Sequence record: OP617745.1
Direction: 5' to 3' (one strand)
DNA: 64,000 nt
Made by a program: the position numbers and the translations under genes. Below are positions 1 through 4,959 of the stretch, piece by piece. The notes beneath the pieces were generated by a model, which saw only the letters and a list, made by a program, of their open reading frames with translations, was not told the DNA's origin and ran no database searches. Position 1 is the stretch's first letter, and the number at the start of each line of letters is the position of its first letter.

Positions 1-2
1 TG

Positions 3-200
3 TTGATTAATAAAGAAGAACACCCAGAAATATATTTGTACGACTATTATGATAAATGCGTATATTCATACGATTCAGTACTGAAACAATTCACTGAAGT
101 ATTTTTTGTTCCTACCCCTCATGGAAACTGGACTGGAATAGGATCAAGAAATGCAGAACCAAAACATTTAGAACATTTTAAAACATTTTTCAAGGATTAA
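3..200 (+). CDS. Hypothetical protein, probably 5'-truncated at the window edge
   Basis: ORF from the track; stop is 2 nt before the thyA start. Confidence 0.6.
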   Translation: MINKEEHPEIYLYDYYDKCVYSYDSVLKQFTEVFFVPTPHGNWTGIGSRNAEPKHLEHFKTFFKD

Positions 201-202
201 AA

Positions 203-1756
203 ATGAAACAACTATTAGACTTATATGATAAAATCTTGAAAGAAGGAGTACAAAGTACAGACCGAACAGGTGTAGGTACTATTAAACTCATAGGTCAACA
301 AATGCGTTTTGATTTGAGTAAAGGGTTTCCAGCAGTAACTACCAAAAGGTTAGCATGGAAAGCAATGGTATCTGAATTACTATGGTTTATTGAAGGTTCC
401 CATGACGAGCGTCGTTTGTGTGAAATTCTTCATGGTACTCGTGATTCGGAAAAGAAAACTATTTGGAGCGATAACTGTTTAGATCGTGCGAAAAATGATC
501 CGAACAGATTTAATGGTGAAATTGTTGGTAATATGTATGGTATGAATTGGCGTTATCAACCATCTGAACCACATAGTTATCAATTCATTAAGAGAAAATC
601 TTATATTGATGATTATGTTGAAAAACATGTTTGTCCAGAAATTACTAGTGAATTTAATGGCATTAAAATACACCAGTCGGCTACATGTGGTGAATATGAA
701 GTTGTTGGAAAGCAAAACAATAATATAGTTATACGTTTTTTAGATACCGGATCTTATAAAATAGTAAAAAGAACTTCAAGAAGTATTAAAGATTTTTTTA
801 AACCATCAATAGAAGGGGTCGGATATTTAGGTGGTGTAATTCCTGATACATTAACTGCGAGAAAATTATATCAAATTTGGAAAGATATGATTATAAGAGT
901 ATATAATCCTAGAAAAAATCATGTATCATATAAAGACGTAACTGTTTGTAAACGTTGGCATAATTTTATGAATTTTTATAATGATTCCTTTTCATTATGG
1001 GGATTCCAAGAATTTGTTGATAGTGGTTATTCGCATCAACTTGATAAAGATTATTATGGTTCAAACATTTATTCACCTGATACTTGTATTTTCATATCAT
1101 CATCATTGAATAAAACATTAAATGGTGGTGGTTATGGATTTAAAATCTATATTTACAAAGATAATATATTTTATTCAATAACCGATTTACAAAAATATCG
1201 TGGATTATCAAGAAAAGCACAACTTCCAAAAGAGTTAACTATATTAGAAGATAATGAAACTCATGTAGTAAGGCCAAAAATATATATTGATCAACTTCAA
1301 CGTTGTATTGATTTAATAAAAAATGACCCAGATTCTAGAAGAATTGTTATTACATCATGGAATTCTAGAGATATTGAAAATGCAGCATTGGGTATGTGTC
1401 ACCCATTAGTTCAATGGTTTGTTATTAATGGTAAATTATCATGCATATTCTATATGCGTAGCACAGATAGCTTTCTTGGTTTGCCTTTTAATATTGCATC
1501 ATATGCACTACTTACCCATATGATAGCACAAATTACTGGATTAGAAGTAGGTGAATTAATTTATAATGGTGGTGATTGTCACATTTATTTGAATCATATT
1601 GAGCAAGTGAAAGAACAATTACAACGAGAACCAATGGAATTACCAAAATTATGGTTAGATCCCACTATAACCGATATTGAATCGTTCACAATGGGTTCAT
1701 TTAAACTATTGGATTATAATCCAATGCCAACTATTAAAGCACCAATGGCAGTATAA
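203..1756 (+). CDS. thyA: Thymidylate synthase with in-frame HNH endonuclease insertion
   Basis: TS motifs DRTGVGT, FPAVTTK, ELLWFI, YGxNWR, IDQL, DSRR, catalytic MCH, YMRSTDSFLGLPFNIASY, GDCHIY and C-terminal MAV; 517 aa against ~270-290 for a typical TS. Confidence 0.95.
   Translation: MKQLLDLYDKILKEGVQSTDRTGVGTIKLIGQQMRFDLSKGFPAVTTKRLAWKAMVSELLWFIEGSHDERRLCEILHGTRDSEKKTIWSDNCLDRAKNDPNRFNGEIVGNMYGMNWRYQPSEPHSYQFIKRKSYIDDYVEKHVCPEITSEFNGIKIHQSATCGEYEVVGKQNNNIVIRFLDTGSYKIVKRTSRSIKDFFKPSIEGVGYLGGVIPDTLTARKLYQIWKDMIIRVYNPRKNHVSYKDVTVCKRWHNFMNFYNDSFSLWGFQEFVDSGYSHQLDKDYYGSNIYSPDTCIFISSSLNKTLNGGGYGFKIYIYKDNIFYSITDLQKYRGLSRKAQLPKELTILEDNETHVVRPKIYIDQLQRCIDLIKNDPDSRRIVITSWNSRDIENAALGMCHPLVQWFVINGKLSCIFYMRSTDSFLGLPFNIASYALLTHMIAQITGLEVGELIYNGGDCHIYLNHIEQVKEQLQREPMELPKLWLDPTITDIESFTMGSFKLLDYNPMPTIKAPMAV
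563..1285 (+). mobile_element. HNH homing-endonuclease domain inserted in-frame in thyA (approximate borders)
   Basis: PSIEGVGYLG, WKDMIIRVY, VTVCKRWHNFMNFY and QLDKDYYGSNIYSPDTCIFIS..LN are typical phage HNH motifs; they lie between TS motifs YGMNWR and IDQL. Confidence 0.8.
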
Positions 1757-1757
1757 T

Positions 1758-1788
1758 AAAAAAGGGAGACATTAAGTCTCCTTTTTTT
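1758..1788. terminator. Bidirectional intrinsic terminator
   Basis: A-tract, GGAGAC-attaa-GTCTCC, T7, between convergent genes. Confidence 0.85.
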
Positions 1789-3319
1789 ATACACCGACAA
1801 CACAACGACCGAGGAATCTCATATCAGGTTCCATCGGAACTTGTAGTTTTACTTTATCCAGTTCAATTGACATATTCTCTACTGCAACATTTTCATAAAA
1901 CCCATTTGACATAAGTTCTTGTACCTGTACTGACTTTGGTTCATCTACGGTAATGACCAATTCATAGTTGATACCATCACTTGAAGGTACCCACGAAGAC
2001 ATGTCAGAAATGTTTATTGTTTCGGAACCACTAATACGTTTCCATTTACCACTGATTTTTTGAATTAATGTATTAAAGCTAGGAGAAAAAGCTAACATGC
2101 CATTTTCACCTAAAGTATTATTGGATGCATCAATAAATGGTGGTCTAAACCCAATCTCTGTTAATTTAGTTTCCCCATTATAGCCATCAACCGTCGGATT
2201 TTGTGGGAAAAATAAAATTTCAGTATTTTTCCAACGCTGAACTTCTTTCGATGAGGCAGTTGCAGAAAACTCACCAGTTACCGAACCCCTGTGATATAAA
2301 CCAGTACTACTATCAGACCATTTACTTGGGTCAATTCCGGGGTTTTCAGTTGGATCATAGGTCTTGTTGTTAAATGTAATCGCTGGTTTATCAACAGTAC
2401 CATATATTGCTGCAAAACGTCCCTCAGCTTCTGAAATACCATCATCATACATTGCATCACCGGTTCTACGTAAACCATCTAAACCATATAAATCAAGTAC
2501 GGATTGTACATCGGAAACTGATGTTGGGAATTGTCGTCCATATGAATTTACTAGTTTATTATCAAATGTAACACTTGTGGCTGCAATACGGGTAGCATAC
2601 TGACGAAGACTTTGCCATTTAGTACCAGTACTGATGATCCAGTCACTATCACGTAAGCCTGGGTCATAACTAGCATTACCAACCTCGAATTGTTCTGTTA
2701 GATCTGGGTCTGATGTTAATGATATAAGACCTTCATGACCAGTAGTTGGGATTTGATCTACATTAAATCTTGCATAAGCAGAGGTAACTGATTTAGAACC
2801 ATTACCATCTGTGGTAAAATAATATTTAATTTCCAACCAGTCACCCTCACCTGATGGGTTAGTTGGTGTGAATATAACTGGTGATGTTGAAGGATTTGTA
2901 GTACTCATGTGAGTAGTAGCTATATCAACAATACCACGAGTTACGTAATAATCACCTGAATTGGTTGAGTCCGTTGGCGGTAGATTATCGTAAACCGAAA
3001 TTTCTGATGGTGGATCTACATCATCGGTATTTGGATTAAAAGTACCTTTATATGTCATACCATTCAATAATGTATCTGGTAAATTTGCAATTGAAATTTT
3101 ACCATTAGCATCTAATTGAACAAAACGTCGATATTCCACTGTATCATCTAATAATTGTAATGTACCTTCAAAAGCTTCCCATTCACTATTATAACGAATC
3201 ATTCCCGGACGTTTAATGTCATTTGGTGGATTTTTCAATAGTGCTTTTGGTAATTCCAAGAAACCATTAGTACTATCGATAATAACACCAGAATCACCAC
3301 GTATTCTATATATACTCAT
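1787..3319 (-). CDS. Putative virion structural (tail/baseplate-associated) protein
   Basis: 510-aa ORF rich in T/S/D/G; GMTYKGTFNP motif; ATAAATA late promoter upstream. Confidence 0.6.
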   Translation of the reverse strand: MSIYRIRGDSGVIIDSTNGFLELPKALLKNPPNDIKRPGMIRYNSEWEAFEGTLQLLDDTVEYRRFVQLDANGKISIANLPDTLLNGMTYKGTFNPNTDDVDPPSEISVYDNLPPTDSTNSGDYYVTRGIVDIATTHMSTTNPSTSPVIFTPTNPSGEGDWLEIKYYFTTDGNGSKSVTSAYARFNVDQIPTTGHEGLISLTSDPDLTEQFEVGNASYDPGLRDSDWIISTGTKWQSLRQYATRIAATSVTFDNKLVNSYGRQFPTSVSDVQSVLDLYGLDGLRRTGDAMYDDGISEAEGRFAAIYGTVDKPAITFNNKTYDPTENPGIDPSKWSDSSTGLYHRGSVTGEFSATASSKEVQRWKNTEILFFPQNPTVDGYNGETKLTEIGFRPPFIDASNNTLGENGMLAFSPSFNTLIQKISGKWKRISGSETINISDMSSWVPSSDGINYELVITVDEPKSVQVQELMSNGFYENVAVENMSIELDKVKLQVPMEPDMRFLGRCVVGV

Positions 3320-3354
3320 TTATATATTTCCTCAATAAGTAATATTGTATATGG

Positions 3355-3361
3355 TATTTAT
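3355..3361 (-). promoter_or_regulatory. Putative late promoter ATAAATA
   Basis: About 35 nt upstream of the start at 3319. Confidence 0.6.
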
Positions 3362-3483
3362 TTTTCGATAATAAAAAAAGTTATTCTTGGAATTATATGT
3401 TTACACACAAACTACGGTACTTTTTCCATGAAAAATATATTCTTTATTTTTAATAAATTATTATATCAAAATCTTGAACCGTA

Positions 3484-3831
3484 TTATACAGATGGTATAC
3501 TAATAAGGGGTTTCCATATACCGCCGTCTTTGATAAAAATATTAACGATGTTGGTTGTATCAATTTGGTAATATACATTACCATCTTCACCTGTACTGGA
3601 ATCTGGAATATCTGTTCCTCGTAATATAGTACTGTTTAATTTAGTATTAAGATGGTTTAATGTAACCAGATGTTGATCTTTGGTAGGTTCACCAGCTTCC
3701 ACTGGCATTAATAGTGTGCCTTCGTAATTATAAATTTTTACATCGGTACCATCTGTACTTAATTTTGCACCATTTTTACCAAGAACAAAATCCTTCTTCA
3801 TAGTCCCTTCTAAGTTAGAAAAAATTGCCAT
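3484..3831 (-). CDS. Hypothetical structural protein
   Basis: 115-aa ORF, GGAG RBS; GTDIPDSSTGEDGNVYY motif is common in fibre proteins. Confidence 0.6.
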   Translation of the reverse strand: MAIFSNLEGTMKKDFVLGKNGAKLSTDGTDVKIYNYEGTLLMPVEAGEPTKDQHLVTLNHLNTKLNSTILRGTDIPDSSTGEDGNVYYQIDTTNIVNIFIKDGGIWKPLISIPSV

Positions 3832-3843
3832 TATAAAATCTCC

Positions 3844-4959
3844 TTAGATATTGTCGCTAATAGGCAGAGTTGGTGCTTGCCATGATAGTGTACAAATAAT
3901 TGTCATATTACCATATGAACTTAAATTAACTGATTCATTAAAAATACAAGAAATTATTTCGTCTTTATCAGAAACAGTGTGATTTGTTTCATTGATTACA
4001 TATCTACTTTGCATTGATATATCAAAATAATCATAACCAGCAATAACAGTACCACCAATATCCTCATTTGCTTCCCCACTGAAACGAATTTTCATATCAG
4101 TTACTGGTGGTTCATACCCCTGTGTTACATTTACTTCGATATTAGTGACAAGATATCCAGCAGGACAAGTACCAATAACCAGTACTGTATTAGTGTATGA
4201 ATGATCGATAGTGTTCACTATAACAACTATATCCTTACCGGCATCTCCTTTATCACCCTTCTCACCTTGCAAGCCTTCTTTACCACGAAATTCAATGCCA
4301 GTGCTCCATTCTTTTTGTACTGGATCTGTATTTTCCACAATATCTACATAATATAATTTACCATCACTTGTGTTATAGAAACAATAATCTTCTGGAAGAT
4401 TAGTAATATCAGGGAAAGTGCTTCCAGTACTATCAATGTGGAATCTACCGCGTGGACCTACTTCACCCCTGAAGCTAATACCGCTCGACCACGTTTGAGT
4501 ACTGGAATCATAAAAATAAAGTTTTCCATCATTGGTATTATAGAAAGTATAACCATCAAATAAACCAGAAGTAGGGAATACCGTACCAGAACTATCTATA
4601 TGGAATGGTTTACCCTGTTCACCTTGCTCACCTTTTCCAAATTCAACCGAATTCCATGTGCTTGACTCGCCTGGATTTGAAGTTTTAAAATACAAAACAC
4701 TTGTGGAATTTGCTAAGCTCAGATAGCTCCACCCAATAGTTTTATCTGTATTAAAATCACTGTCAGGTATTTCAAAACCAATTTCGTTTGGATAAAAATT
4801 ACTTCCATCAGAACCGTCATGACCAACAACCAGACCTAAATCTTCAATGGTATTATCTGCATAAGTTACAATCAAATGACCATCTGTGCTGATTTTCATA
4901 CTTTTAATACCAGAATTATTACATGAGCAATTGGACCCATTATTAAATGAAATTGTCAT
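3844..4959 (-). CDS. Collagen-like (Gly-X-Y) repeat virion protein
   Basis: GEQGEQGKP, GEVGPRG and GKEGLQGEKGDKGDAGKD, alternating with a repeated FHIDSxGxxFP..FYNTxDGKLY module. Confidence 0.7.
   Translation of the reverse strand: MTISFNNGSNCSCNNSGIKSMKISTDGHLIVTYADNTIEDLGLVVGHDGSDGSNFYPNEIGFEIPDSDFNTDKTIGWSYLSLANSTSVLYFKTSNPGESSTWNSVEFGKGEQGEQGKPFHIDSSGTVFPTSGLFDGYTFYNTNDGKLYFYDSSTQTWSSGISFRGEVGPRGRFHIDSTGSTFPDITNLPEDYCFYNTSDGKLYYVDIVENTDPVQKEWSTGIEFRGKEGLQGEKGDKGDAGKDIVVIVNTIDHSYTNTVLVIGTCPAGYLVTNIEVNVTQGYEPPVTDMKIRFSGEANEDIGGTVIAGYDYFDISMQSRYVINETNHTVSDKDEIISCIFNESVNLSSYGNMTIICTLSWQAPTLPISDNI

Follow-up and report, generated by a model that had tools for sequence, protein, structure and literature searches.

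The thymidylate synthase gene (thyA, or td) of Klebsiella phage KP13-7 carries, in some 240 codons read in frame with the rest, what is probably a mobile homing-endonuclease domain of the IPA-HNH type (ICP1 Gp59-like; PHROG 2081/953), lodged in a surface loop of the enzyme and never spliced out. KP13-7 is a jumbo phage of the genus Alcyoneusvirus with a 358-kb genome; the window, by which we mean the whole 64,000-nucleotide stretch of DNA that was analysed, is 100% identical to it (OP617745.1), window position 1 being record position 293702. The gene is a single open reading frame (ORF) of 517 residues (203..1756, plus strand), labelled simply thyA in the record, and it encodes a chimera in which thymidylate synthase (TS) sequence stands on both sides of the insert: Pfam PF00303 matches it in two stretches (E 1.6e-87). 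A sequence-only reading had drawn attention to the gene by reporting about 241 residues of nuclease-family sequence in frame between YGMNWR and IDQL, and this description holds. It had treated the arrangement as a single oddity; in fact the arrangement recurs throughout a large family. Neither a paralogue of the insert nor a second TS is present within the 64-kb window.

The two halves of thymidylate synthase

Pfam, NCBIfam and PDB sequence searches divide the TS into residues 1-~117 and ~361-517. The N-terminal part (residues 1-117; 203..553, plus strand) ends in GNMYGMNWR and holds D20-R21-T22, E58 and W116, as placed by PDB and Pfam alignments and by invariant columns. The C-terminal part (residues 361-517; 1283..1753, plus strand), which aligns with residues 158-315 of 3uwl at 179 bits in the PDB alignment, holds R379-R380, C399-H400, R419, S420, D422, N430, D458, H460 and Y462. 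The protein scores 297 bits with NCBIfam TIGR03284, for which the cut-off is 108. The ThyA catalytic pair C399-H400 and the residues that bind dUMP and folate are all present, and are invariant or nearly so in the 26-33 proteins aligned. A model of the whole protein made with AlphaFold2 (AF2) has pLDDT 91.7 and pTM 0.88, and its TS part superposes on solved TS structures with Z 31-35.

These data bear on the possibility that the insertion killed the enzyme, that the phage makes do with the thyA of its host and that the ORF is a decaying relic. Klebsiella does have a thyA of its own, and the window contains no second TS. Set against this, a comparison of KP13-7 with Escherichia phage UE-S1 gives a ratio of nonsynonymous to synonymous substitution (dN/dS) of 0.02-0.09 in the TS halves, no member of the family departs from the catalytic and substrate-binding residues, prediction of the TS fold is highly confident, and the arrangement is kept in dozens of clusters defined at 50% identity. 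The low dN/dS in particular argues that td of KP13-7 is not a relic; we regard inactivation as highly improbable, and expect the chimera to be an active TS.

Architecture of the insert

The inserted module (residues 118-360; 554..1282, plus strand) is homing-endonuclease-like, of the IPA-HNH / phrog_2081 type, and translated in frame. It places ~243 residues between W116-R117 and D363-Q364, a stretch that is only ~10 residues long in enzymes of the E. coli type. Its boundaries, to the residue, are approximate; the range first proposed, 563-1285, corresponds to residues 121-361. As had been claimed at the outset, the insert contains no stop codon and there is no room for non-coding sequence on either side of it. 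In-frame stops number 0, compared with 19 and 34 in the other two frames; 243 open codons would arise by chance at the composition of the insert (27% G+C) with a probability of ~6e-11, and not one open frame came out of 20,000 shuffles. The net gain in size relative to the insert-less relatives K64-1 and 121Q, whose enzymes have 309 residues, is only 208 residues, because these carry an unrelated 37-residue loop at the same place (DWVDYKFSS...HGVVMRR; 1536-1670 of the K64-1 locus, and the same place in td of 121Q). MAFFT alignments suggested that this loop might be a decayed insert; with a profile-profile probability of 0.3%, the suggestion was rejected.

In the AF2 model the chain leaves the TS via strands 118-120 and 126-130 and re-enters it via strands 346-349, 354-358 and 361-363, so that the insert begins and ends at neighbouring places in the structure. 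Modelled alone, the insert has pLDDT 90.7. A small beta-barrel (residues ~140-196; 620..790, plus strand; predicted strands 156-188) is optional, being absent from variants of ~469-477 residues; alignment shows it to be missing in Vibrio phage D181 and in the homologues P0017 and P0020-P0023. Its fold matches, to Tudor/SH3/KOW-like domains, are weak (Z 3-3.7). The conserved core (residues 201-316; 803..1150, plus strand) has a helical part and a predicted beta-beta-alpha element that carries the motif L-D281-K282-D283-Y-Y-G-S...N303, with strands at 279-281 and 296-298 and a helix at 300-306 in the AF2 model; D-K-D is encoded at 1043-1051 and N303 at 1109-1111, on the plus strand. Invariant residues of the core are G207, W226, R232, W252, D261, D281, K282 and Y290. 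The C-terminal small domain (residues ~309-349; 1127..1249, plus strand) resembles the NUMOD and helix-turn-helix (HTH) DNA-binding modules of intron endonucleases, matching the DNA-binding domain of I-TevI with Z 3.1, and is shortened in this lineage: longer, HTH-like versions are found in Bacillus phage 015DV002, P0027 and P0028. Relatives carry PF22083 (I-HmuI_NUMOD-like), NUMOD1 or NUMOD3.

Between KP13-7 and UE-S1 dN/dS is 0.16 for the insert and 0.086 for its core, which indicates that the insert is under purifying selection as a protein. Promoter-like sites within the insert are no commoner than in shuffled sequence, and a search for flanking direct or inverted repeats able to mediate excision at the DNA level yielded only short repeats of the kind expected by chance. 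An 11-nucleotide near-repeat coding K-N-D-P (491-501 and 1319-1329, 828 nucleotides apart and in frame) does flank the insert; it is probably coincidental, since recombination between the two copies would delete essential TS residues.

Tests for removal of the insert

On the textbook view, a homing endonuclease inside an essential gene needs to be removed with an intron or an intein, or else sits between genes. No intein or Hint profile from Pfam or NCBIfam matched the protein at E<=1, and neither the whole-protein model nor that of the insert had an intein or Hint fold among its 50 best structural matches. The C-terminal junction reads V-V-R-P-K-I-Y-I-D-Q-L in KP13-7 and V-V-R-P-x-I-x-I-D-Q over 81 complete insert-bearing proteins, with R357 conserved in 77 of the 81, D363 in 68 and Q364 in 79. 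No column in these proteins shows a conserved Asn (or Gln/Asp) followed by Cys/Ser/Thr at this junction; N[CST] occurs anywhere within the 24-residue stretch scanned in only 13 of them, at no fixed column. Position 121, at the N-terminal junction, is occupied by Cys in 24 of the proteins, by Ser in 14 and by Ile, Gly, Ala or other residues in the rest; it may equally be a native residue of the TS loop. The initial observation that intein block B and the terminal HN are missing is borne out, for the C-terminal junction across 81 homologues, and on these features the insert is not an intein.

Removal could still be imagined at the protein level, by non-canonical splicing or by proteolysis along an unknown intein-like or protease route. 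The Cys or Ser found at position 121 in 38/81 proteins lends itself to this idea, as does the description of novel intein classes in phages (bioRxiv 10.1101/2025.01.02.630785). Apart from the missing profiles, fold and C-terminal residues, including the +1 Cys/Ser/Thr, it has to contend with the absence of the N-junction Cys/Ser from more than half of the family, and with the existence of much-shortened inserts, described below, in which no splicing blocks are recognisable. We give it very little credence.

Removal at the RNA level would require a group I (or other) intron whose ORF is in frame by chance, or translational bypassing. The td gene is a classic home of group I introns, and in the related Klebsiella phage RCIP0023 an intron endonuclease is annotated at another place in td. 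A search of window positions 1-2400 for Rfam group I introns at E<=10 found no match, but this negative has no value as evidence: the intron annotated in RCIP0023 likewise escaped detection, at the gathering threshold as well as at E<=10. More telling is that frame and peptide are conserved across both junctions in the 81 TS-insert-TS proteins, whose inserts diverge to ~25% identity: introns need not stay in frame, and this, with the lack of non-coding space, makes a group I intron very unlikely at this site. Protein conservation and low dN/dS likewise extend to both junctions, and there is no stop codon or take-off and landing arrangement such as bypassing would call for. Contigs from two wastewater metatranscriptome libraries bridge both junctions, the 5' one at 458-608 and the 3' one at 1227-1451, with no mismatch, and no joint that skips the insert was found in metatranscriptome or metagenome contigs. 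An RNA-level route is, in our estimation, scarcely credible. Two options had been offered by the sequence-only reading: removal by some unknown mechanism finds no support in sequence comparisons, while a splicing-free element that persists as a permanent domain of TS is favoured by all the comparative evidence gathered.

Relationship to homing endonucleases

By homology, the insert is a member of the IPA-HNH / phrog_2081 family. It matches three PHROG families, all labelled HNH endonuclease (phrog_2081, E 1.7e-33; phrog_953, 1e-25; phrog_374, 2e-20), and in tblastn searches its core (residues 201-316) is 35% identical (E 8e-10) to the gene of Vibrio phage ICP1 'previously called GP59' and also matches Barba- and KIL-type phages, which are named in PMC10448857. 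ICP1 Gp59 is a named representative of the IPA-HNH homing endonucleases, proteins with atypical HNH domains that HHsearch alone detects and that in most cases precede an AP2 domain (Barth, Dunham and Seed 2023, PMC10448857). Members of phrog_2081 have their genes inside group I introns that interrupt DNA polymerase genes of Bastillevirinae (PMC11878797). The insert of KP13-7 is without an AP2 domain; some of its free-standing relatives have one (PF00847). No Pfam or NCBIfam model matches the insert. The initial label 'HNH-type' survives in part: the PHROG assignments and the homology to Gp59 sustain it, whereas a Pfam HNH match and the canonical His are wanting.

Phage proteins make up the structural neighbours of the insert in BFVD, the ESM Atlas and AlphaFold DB, and the sole recognised domains in these proteins are NUMOD1, NUMOD3, I-HmuI_NUMOD-like, AP2 and DUF723. 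Since what is recognised in the neighbours amounts only to the DNA-binding modules of homing endonucleases, the insert-type module is the candidate nuclease; if these proteins are indeed endonucleases, the module that they share with the insert must be the part that cuts. A Foldseek search of the PDB with the insert gave nothing at E<=0.001, and a profile search of PDB sequences gave only a chance match. D-K-D is intact in 75/81 proteins, and Lys282 is found in ICP1 Gp59 too, within the same L-D-K-D motif. N303 is conserved in 70/81 and lost in decayed copies; its position suggests that it could be a metal ligand. Direct support for an HNH active site is weak.

Distribution of the insert among phages

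The family to which the insert belongs is very large and has no curated domain model. Among size-matched proteins that match the insert, 29/30 are TS with the same insertion, at 28-100% insert identity. A profile built from 27 inserts and searched against 1.84 billion representative proteins found 30,280 at E<=0.001 and 358 at E<=1e-30. The best 149 of the 30,280 consist of 62 complete TS-insert-TS proteins, 7 partial ones and 80 without TS; these last are free-standing proteins of 180-300 residues, or else are longer and contain the module twice in tandem. Tandem copies are seen in P0041, P0042, P0044, P0046, P0056, P0057 and others, some of which also repeat the small beta subdomain. That many free-standing relatives hold two copies suggests that the functional unit is a pair of modules.

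In every named example the insert lies at the same structural position. Escherichia phage UE-S1, of the genus Asteriusvirus, has an insert of 83% identity; in the same genus, Escherichia phage ph0011 has at the same td site another variant of the insert, only 26-29% identical, in a protein of 546 residues annotated 'hypothetical protein' (2078-3715 of its locus). Insert-bearing TS are also present in Bacillus phage 015DV002 (Bastillevirinae), in Enterococcus phage 163 (1620-3092 of its locus), in the RB49-type Shigella phage Sf20 and, with a short insert, in Vibrio phage D181, whose 477-residue TS (2057-3487 of its locus) is annotated 'HNH endonuclease'. Mis-annotation of the D181 type is likely to recur in large collections of Vibrio phages.

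In Enterococcus phage 163, P0028 and P0030 the insert-bearing 'TS' lacks the D-R-T-G motif and reads E-D-G-x-P-A instead. These proteins may be TS-like paralogues such as deoxynucleotide hydroxymethylases, in which case the element lives also in sister enzymes of TS.

Recombination around the insert

A survey of presence and absence among relatives, as proposed in the sequence-only reading, found the insert to be patchy among near-identical phages. Within Alcyoneusvirus it is present in KP13-7 and phiKp_21 and absent from K64-1, RaK2 and Muenster; within Asteriusvirus it is present in UE-S1 and absent from 121Q and many other phages. Identity computed in segments of 60 nucleotides reveals an imported tract (481..1500, plus strand) that comprises the insert together with ~75 nucleotides of upstream and ~215 nucleotides of downstream td sequence and is foreign to the genus of the phage itself, with weaker mosaicism over ~300-1790. 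KP13-7 and K64-1 are 97-100% identical outside ~300-1790 and ~50-60% identical within 481-1500; UE-S1 and 121Q are 93-98% identical outside 481-1500 and ~50% inside; KP13-7 and UE-S1, by comparison, are 73-95% identical inside it. Because the tract is foreign with respect to K64-1 and 121Q and yet similar in KP13-7 and UE-S1, we conclude from these alignments that the insert entered two genera by recombination with td flanks attached, the signature of co-conversion.

Insert and TS identities correlate loosely (r = 0.57, Mantel p = 0.001), with departures in both directions: UE-S1 and ph0011 have TS that are 73% identical and inserts that are 26% identical, while in P0007 and P0020 the TS identity is 49% and that of the inserts 67%. 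The G+C content of the insert is 25-28%, that of its surroundings 31-39%. Between KP13-7 and UE-S1 synonymous divergence (dS) is 0.54 in the insert and 0.95-1.85 in the TS halves, which hints either at a later exchange of the insert than of its flanks or at a restriction of change by its AT-rich codon usage. The upstream flank in one large subfamily has RFNG..GNMY where G-P-x-Y-G is canonical. The 35 strict matches and the variants of this form all have the insert, and it occurs in 0/106 insert-less proteins, a sample that is biased. RFNG..GNMY may be an immune version of the nuclease target, or a structural adaptation to the insert.

A different interruption of td was seen in RCIP0023 (1203-3160 of its locus) and in W12-3 (PP728206.1), at about residues 205-211 of the 309-residue form. 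It is of ~1.1 kb, with non-coding flanks and an ORF annotated 'intron-associated endonuclease 1'. As this intervening sequence occupies a different site from the insert, td of this phage group hosts, by comparison of the loci, at least three different mobile elements.

Decay of the insert in place

Some copies of the insert have shrunk within TS genes whose two halves are intact. Short inserts of 134-143 residues are found in P0195, P0197 and Sf20, which belongs to the RB49 species; in P0045 and P0188 the insert has internal deletions. All five lack both D-K-D, the corresponding residues being DSD, NKS, DKN, DIE and SKE, and N303. D-K-D is kept in 75/76 of the other inserts, a single full-length insert being the only one to deviate. 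Decay is the expected end of the life cycle of a homing endonuclease; here it would proceed by in-frame deletions that shrink the element without removing it cleanly.

Neighbouring genes

Downstream of td, a terminator-like hairpin (1765-1781, minus strand) lies between it and a convergent gene (1787-3319, minus strand; 510 residues), the counterpart of which is annotated 'structural protein' in K64-1. Minus-strand genes beyond this, at 3484-4959, look collagen-repeat or fibre-like.

Discussion

We propose that td of KP13-7 is expressed as one polypeptide of ~60 kDa, the two TS halves of which would fold into a normal TS. The insert would fold on its own, into a small beta-barrel, a core with D-K-D...N on the beta-beta-alpha element and a NUMOD-like tail, its ends meeting as a beta-ribbon by which the loop of TS is closed. 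During mixed infection the nuclease would cut its presumed target, the insert-less td allele, and repair would copy into this allele the insert and neighbouring td sequence; the td flanks copied along would hold the changes that render the donor allele immune. Such homing would be like the 'intronless' homing of free-standing phage endonucleases. Residence in a loop of the enzyme would supply the element with expression signals and guard it from loss, since imprecise deletion destroys td; after fixation, in-frame deletions would reduce it to a 'mini-insert'. ThyA-type TS is an obligate homodimer, and the chimera would therefore present two nuclease modules, mimicking the free-standing relatives with two tandem copies. 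This role of dimerisation we infer by analogy. A fuller version of the proposal is that the chimera is both an active TS and an active site-specific nuclease, that the homodimer provides two modules for a double-strand break, and that the element drives its own spread with immune td flanks in jumbo Klebsiella phages, RB49-type T4 relatives, Vibrio phages and Bacillus and Enterococcus Herelleviridae, thereby occupying a third habitat besides introns and inteins. We put this fuller version forward tentatively, with slightly more doubt than conviction.

Several observations weigh against the view that the insert is a mobile nuclease domain that is never removed. Pfam HNH, HNH_3 or similar models match neither the insert nor ten free-standing relatives; the position of the canonical HNH general-base His, where the first strand ends, is taken by Lys282; and the best fold match of the insert among solved structures, though to the HNH enzyme PacI, has Z 5.1, below the tool's noise level of ~7-8. 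The nuclease activity is putative, deduced from homology, and the absence of processing is presumed. The contigs that cross the junctions fit unspliced RNA, but could stem from phage DNA in the RNA library. The recombination tracts could reflect the ordinary mosaicism of phage genomes, and the sample of insert-less TS, obtained in one search centred on the jumbo-phage clade, is biased to that clade, so that gains and losses are not countable. Finally, a domain that has been domesticated and is no longer selfish would just as well be expected to show strong purifying selection and to yield a confidently packed model.

This last alternative deserves the most attention. The insert would descend from a homing endonuclease but now be a non-cutting DNA or RNA binder that serves the phage and is passed on together with TS, for the most part vertically; it might anchor the synthesis of dTMP at replicating DNA, control td expression, or hinder competitors by binding. 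Beyond the Lys at position 282 and the strength of purifying selection, the pTM of the full-length model suggests a fixed arrangement with TS, the identities of insert and TS do correlate overall, and the constant company of RFNG..GNMY and the insert in one subfamily could be structural co-adaptation. There is also a precedent: homing-endonuclease domains are known to have been domesticated in the ICP1/PLE system, as in CapR (PMC10448857). However, the insert is present in some and absent from others of phages that are 97-100% identical around the gene, a 26%-identical variant sits at the same site in the same genus (ph0011 versus UE-S1), and truncated copies that lack the motif persist within otherwise intact TS genes. 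An element so dispensable is not readily seen as a domain needed by the phage, and we consider domestication unlikely, although not to be dismissed; a mobile endonuclease domain remains the reading that we favour.

Comparison with known systems brings out what is unusual in the arrangement. The closest are the IPA-HNH proteins of ICP1 (Gp59, Gp115-116 and Gp209) and of Barba- and KIL-like phages, and PHROG families 2081, 953 and 374, which have a homologous core with the same L-D-K-D motif, and which resemble the insert in sporadic distribution, in recombination boundaries and in partner modules typical of homing endonucleases. They are free-standing or intron-encoded, however, with an N-terminal nuclease-like part and a C-terminal AP2 or NUMOD, whereas the KP13-7 insert is embedded in frame in an enzyme and has no AP2 and no start, stop or promoter of its own. 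The group I introns of TS genes (T4 td with I-TevI, Bacillus thyA with I-BmoI, and those of phage beta22, Vibrio phage pVa5 and RCIP0023) share with it the host gene, a selfish logic and co-conversion of flanks; but they comprise a ribozyme with non-coding flanks and an endonuclease ORF with its own start and stop, at another insertion site, and the insert has neither ribozyme nor separate ORF. With the Seg and Mob enzymes of T4 and the nrdA gene split by mobE, the likeness lies in homing proposed to take place without splicing, in donor immunity through flank polymorphisms and in long co-conversion tracts; the difference is that these elements either occupy intergenic positions or divide the host gene so that it yields two polypeptides, as mobE does to nrdA of Aeromonas phage Aeh1 (cited in PMC10448857), and KP13-7 has one polypeptide. 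Endonuclease-bearing inteins, such as the LAGLIDADG intein of ICP1 NrdA and phage HNH inteins, are likewise in frame in a conserved enzyme of nucleotide metabolism, co-translated with it and given to decay into mini forms. They differ from the insert, which has no Hint domain, junction nucleophiles or C-terminal Asn; lacking any splicing domain or chemistry, it obliges its host TS to work with the insert in place. LAGLIDADG ORFs are also fused in frame, with no intein, to mitochondrial genes of fungi, rps3 among them; the fusions there are terminal and often duplicate the displaced end of the host gene, whereas the insert of KP13-7 is internal, in a loop of a folded enzyme.

None of these systems combines an internal in-frame position with the absence of removal. 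Literature searches found no published description of an unspliced TS-endonuclease arrangement; an intein survey of actinophages that lists thymidylate synthase concerns the ThyX type (IPR003669). What is new here is the mode of residence; the endonuclease family itself is known.

A domain of a nuclease family thus appears to bypass splicing by occupying a loop at which the enzyme tolerates a passenger of 240 residues. The arrangement is common enough, and old enough, to display invasion, maintenance and decay, and its recurrence in many unrelated phages suggests that selfish nuclease genes have a third means of residing within essential ones. If this is true, the space in which selfish elements are sought would widen, and 'domain insertions' in phage enzymes may often prove to be such elements; TS labelled 'HNH endonuclease' or 'hypothetical protein' would be explained as mis-annotations. 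The chimera would offer a first biochemical handle on a large uncharacterised family, of ~30,000 clusters at 50% identity, with its unusual D-K-D motif, a natural model for the way in which proteins make room for large inserted domains, and possibly a new scaffold for dimer-dependent site-specific nucleases. It would also bear on the competition between co-infecting jumbo phages.

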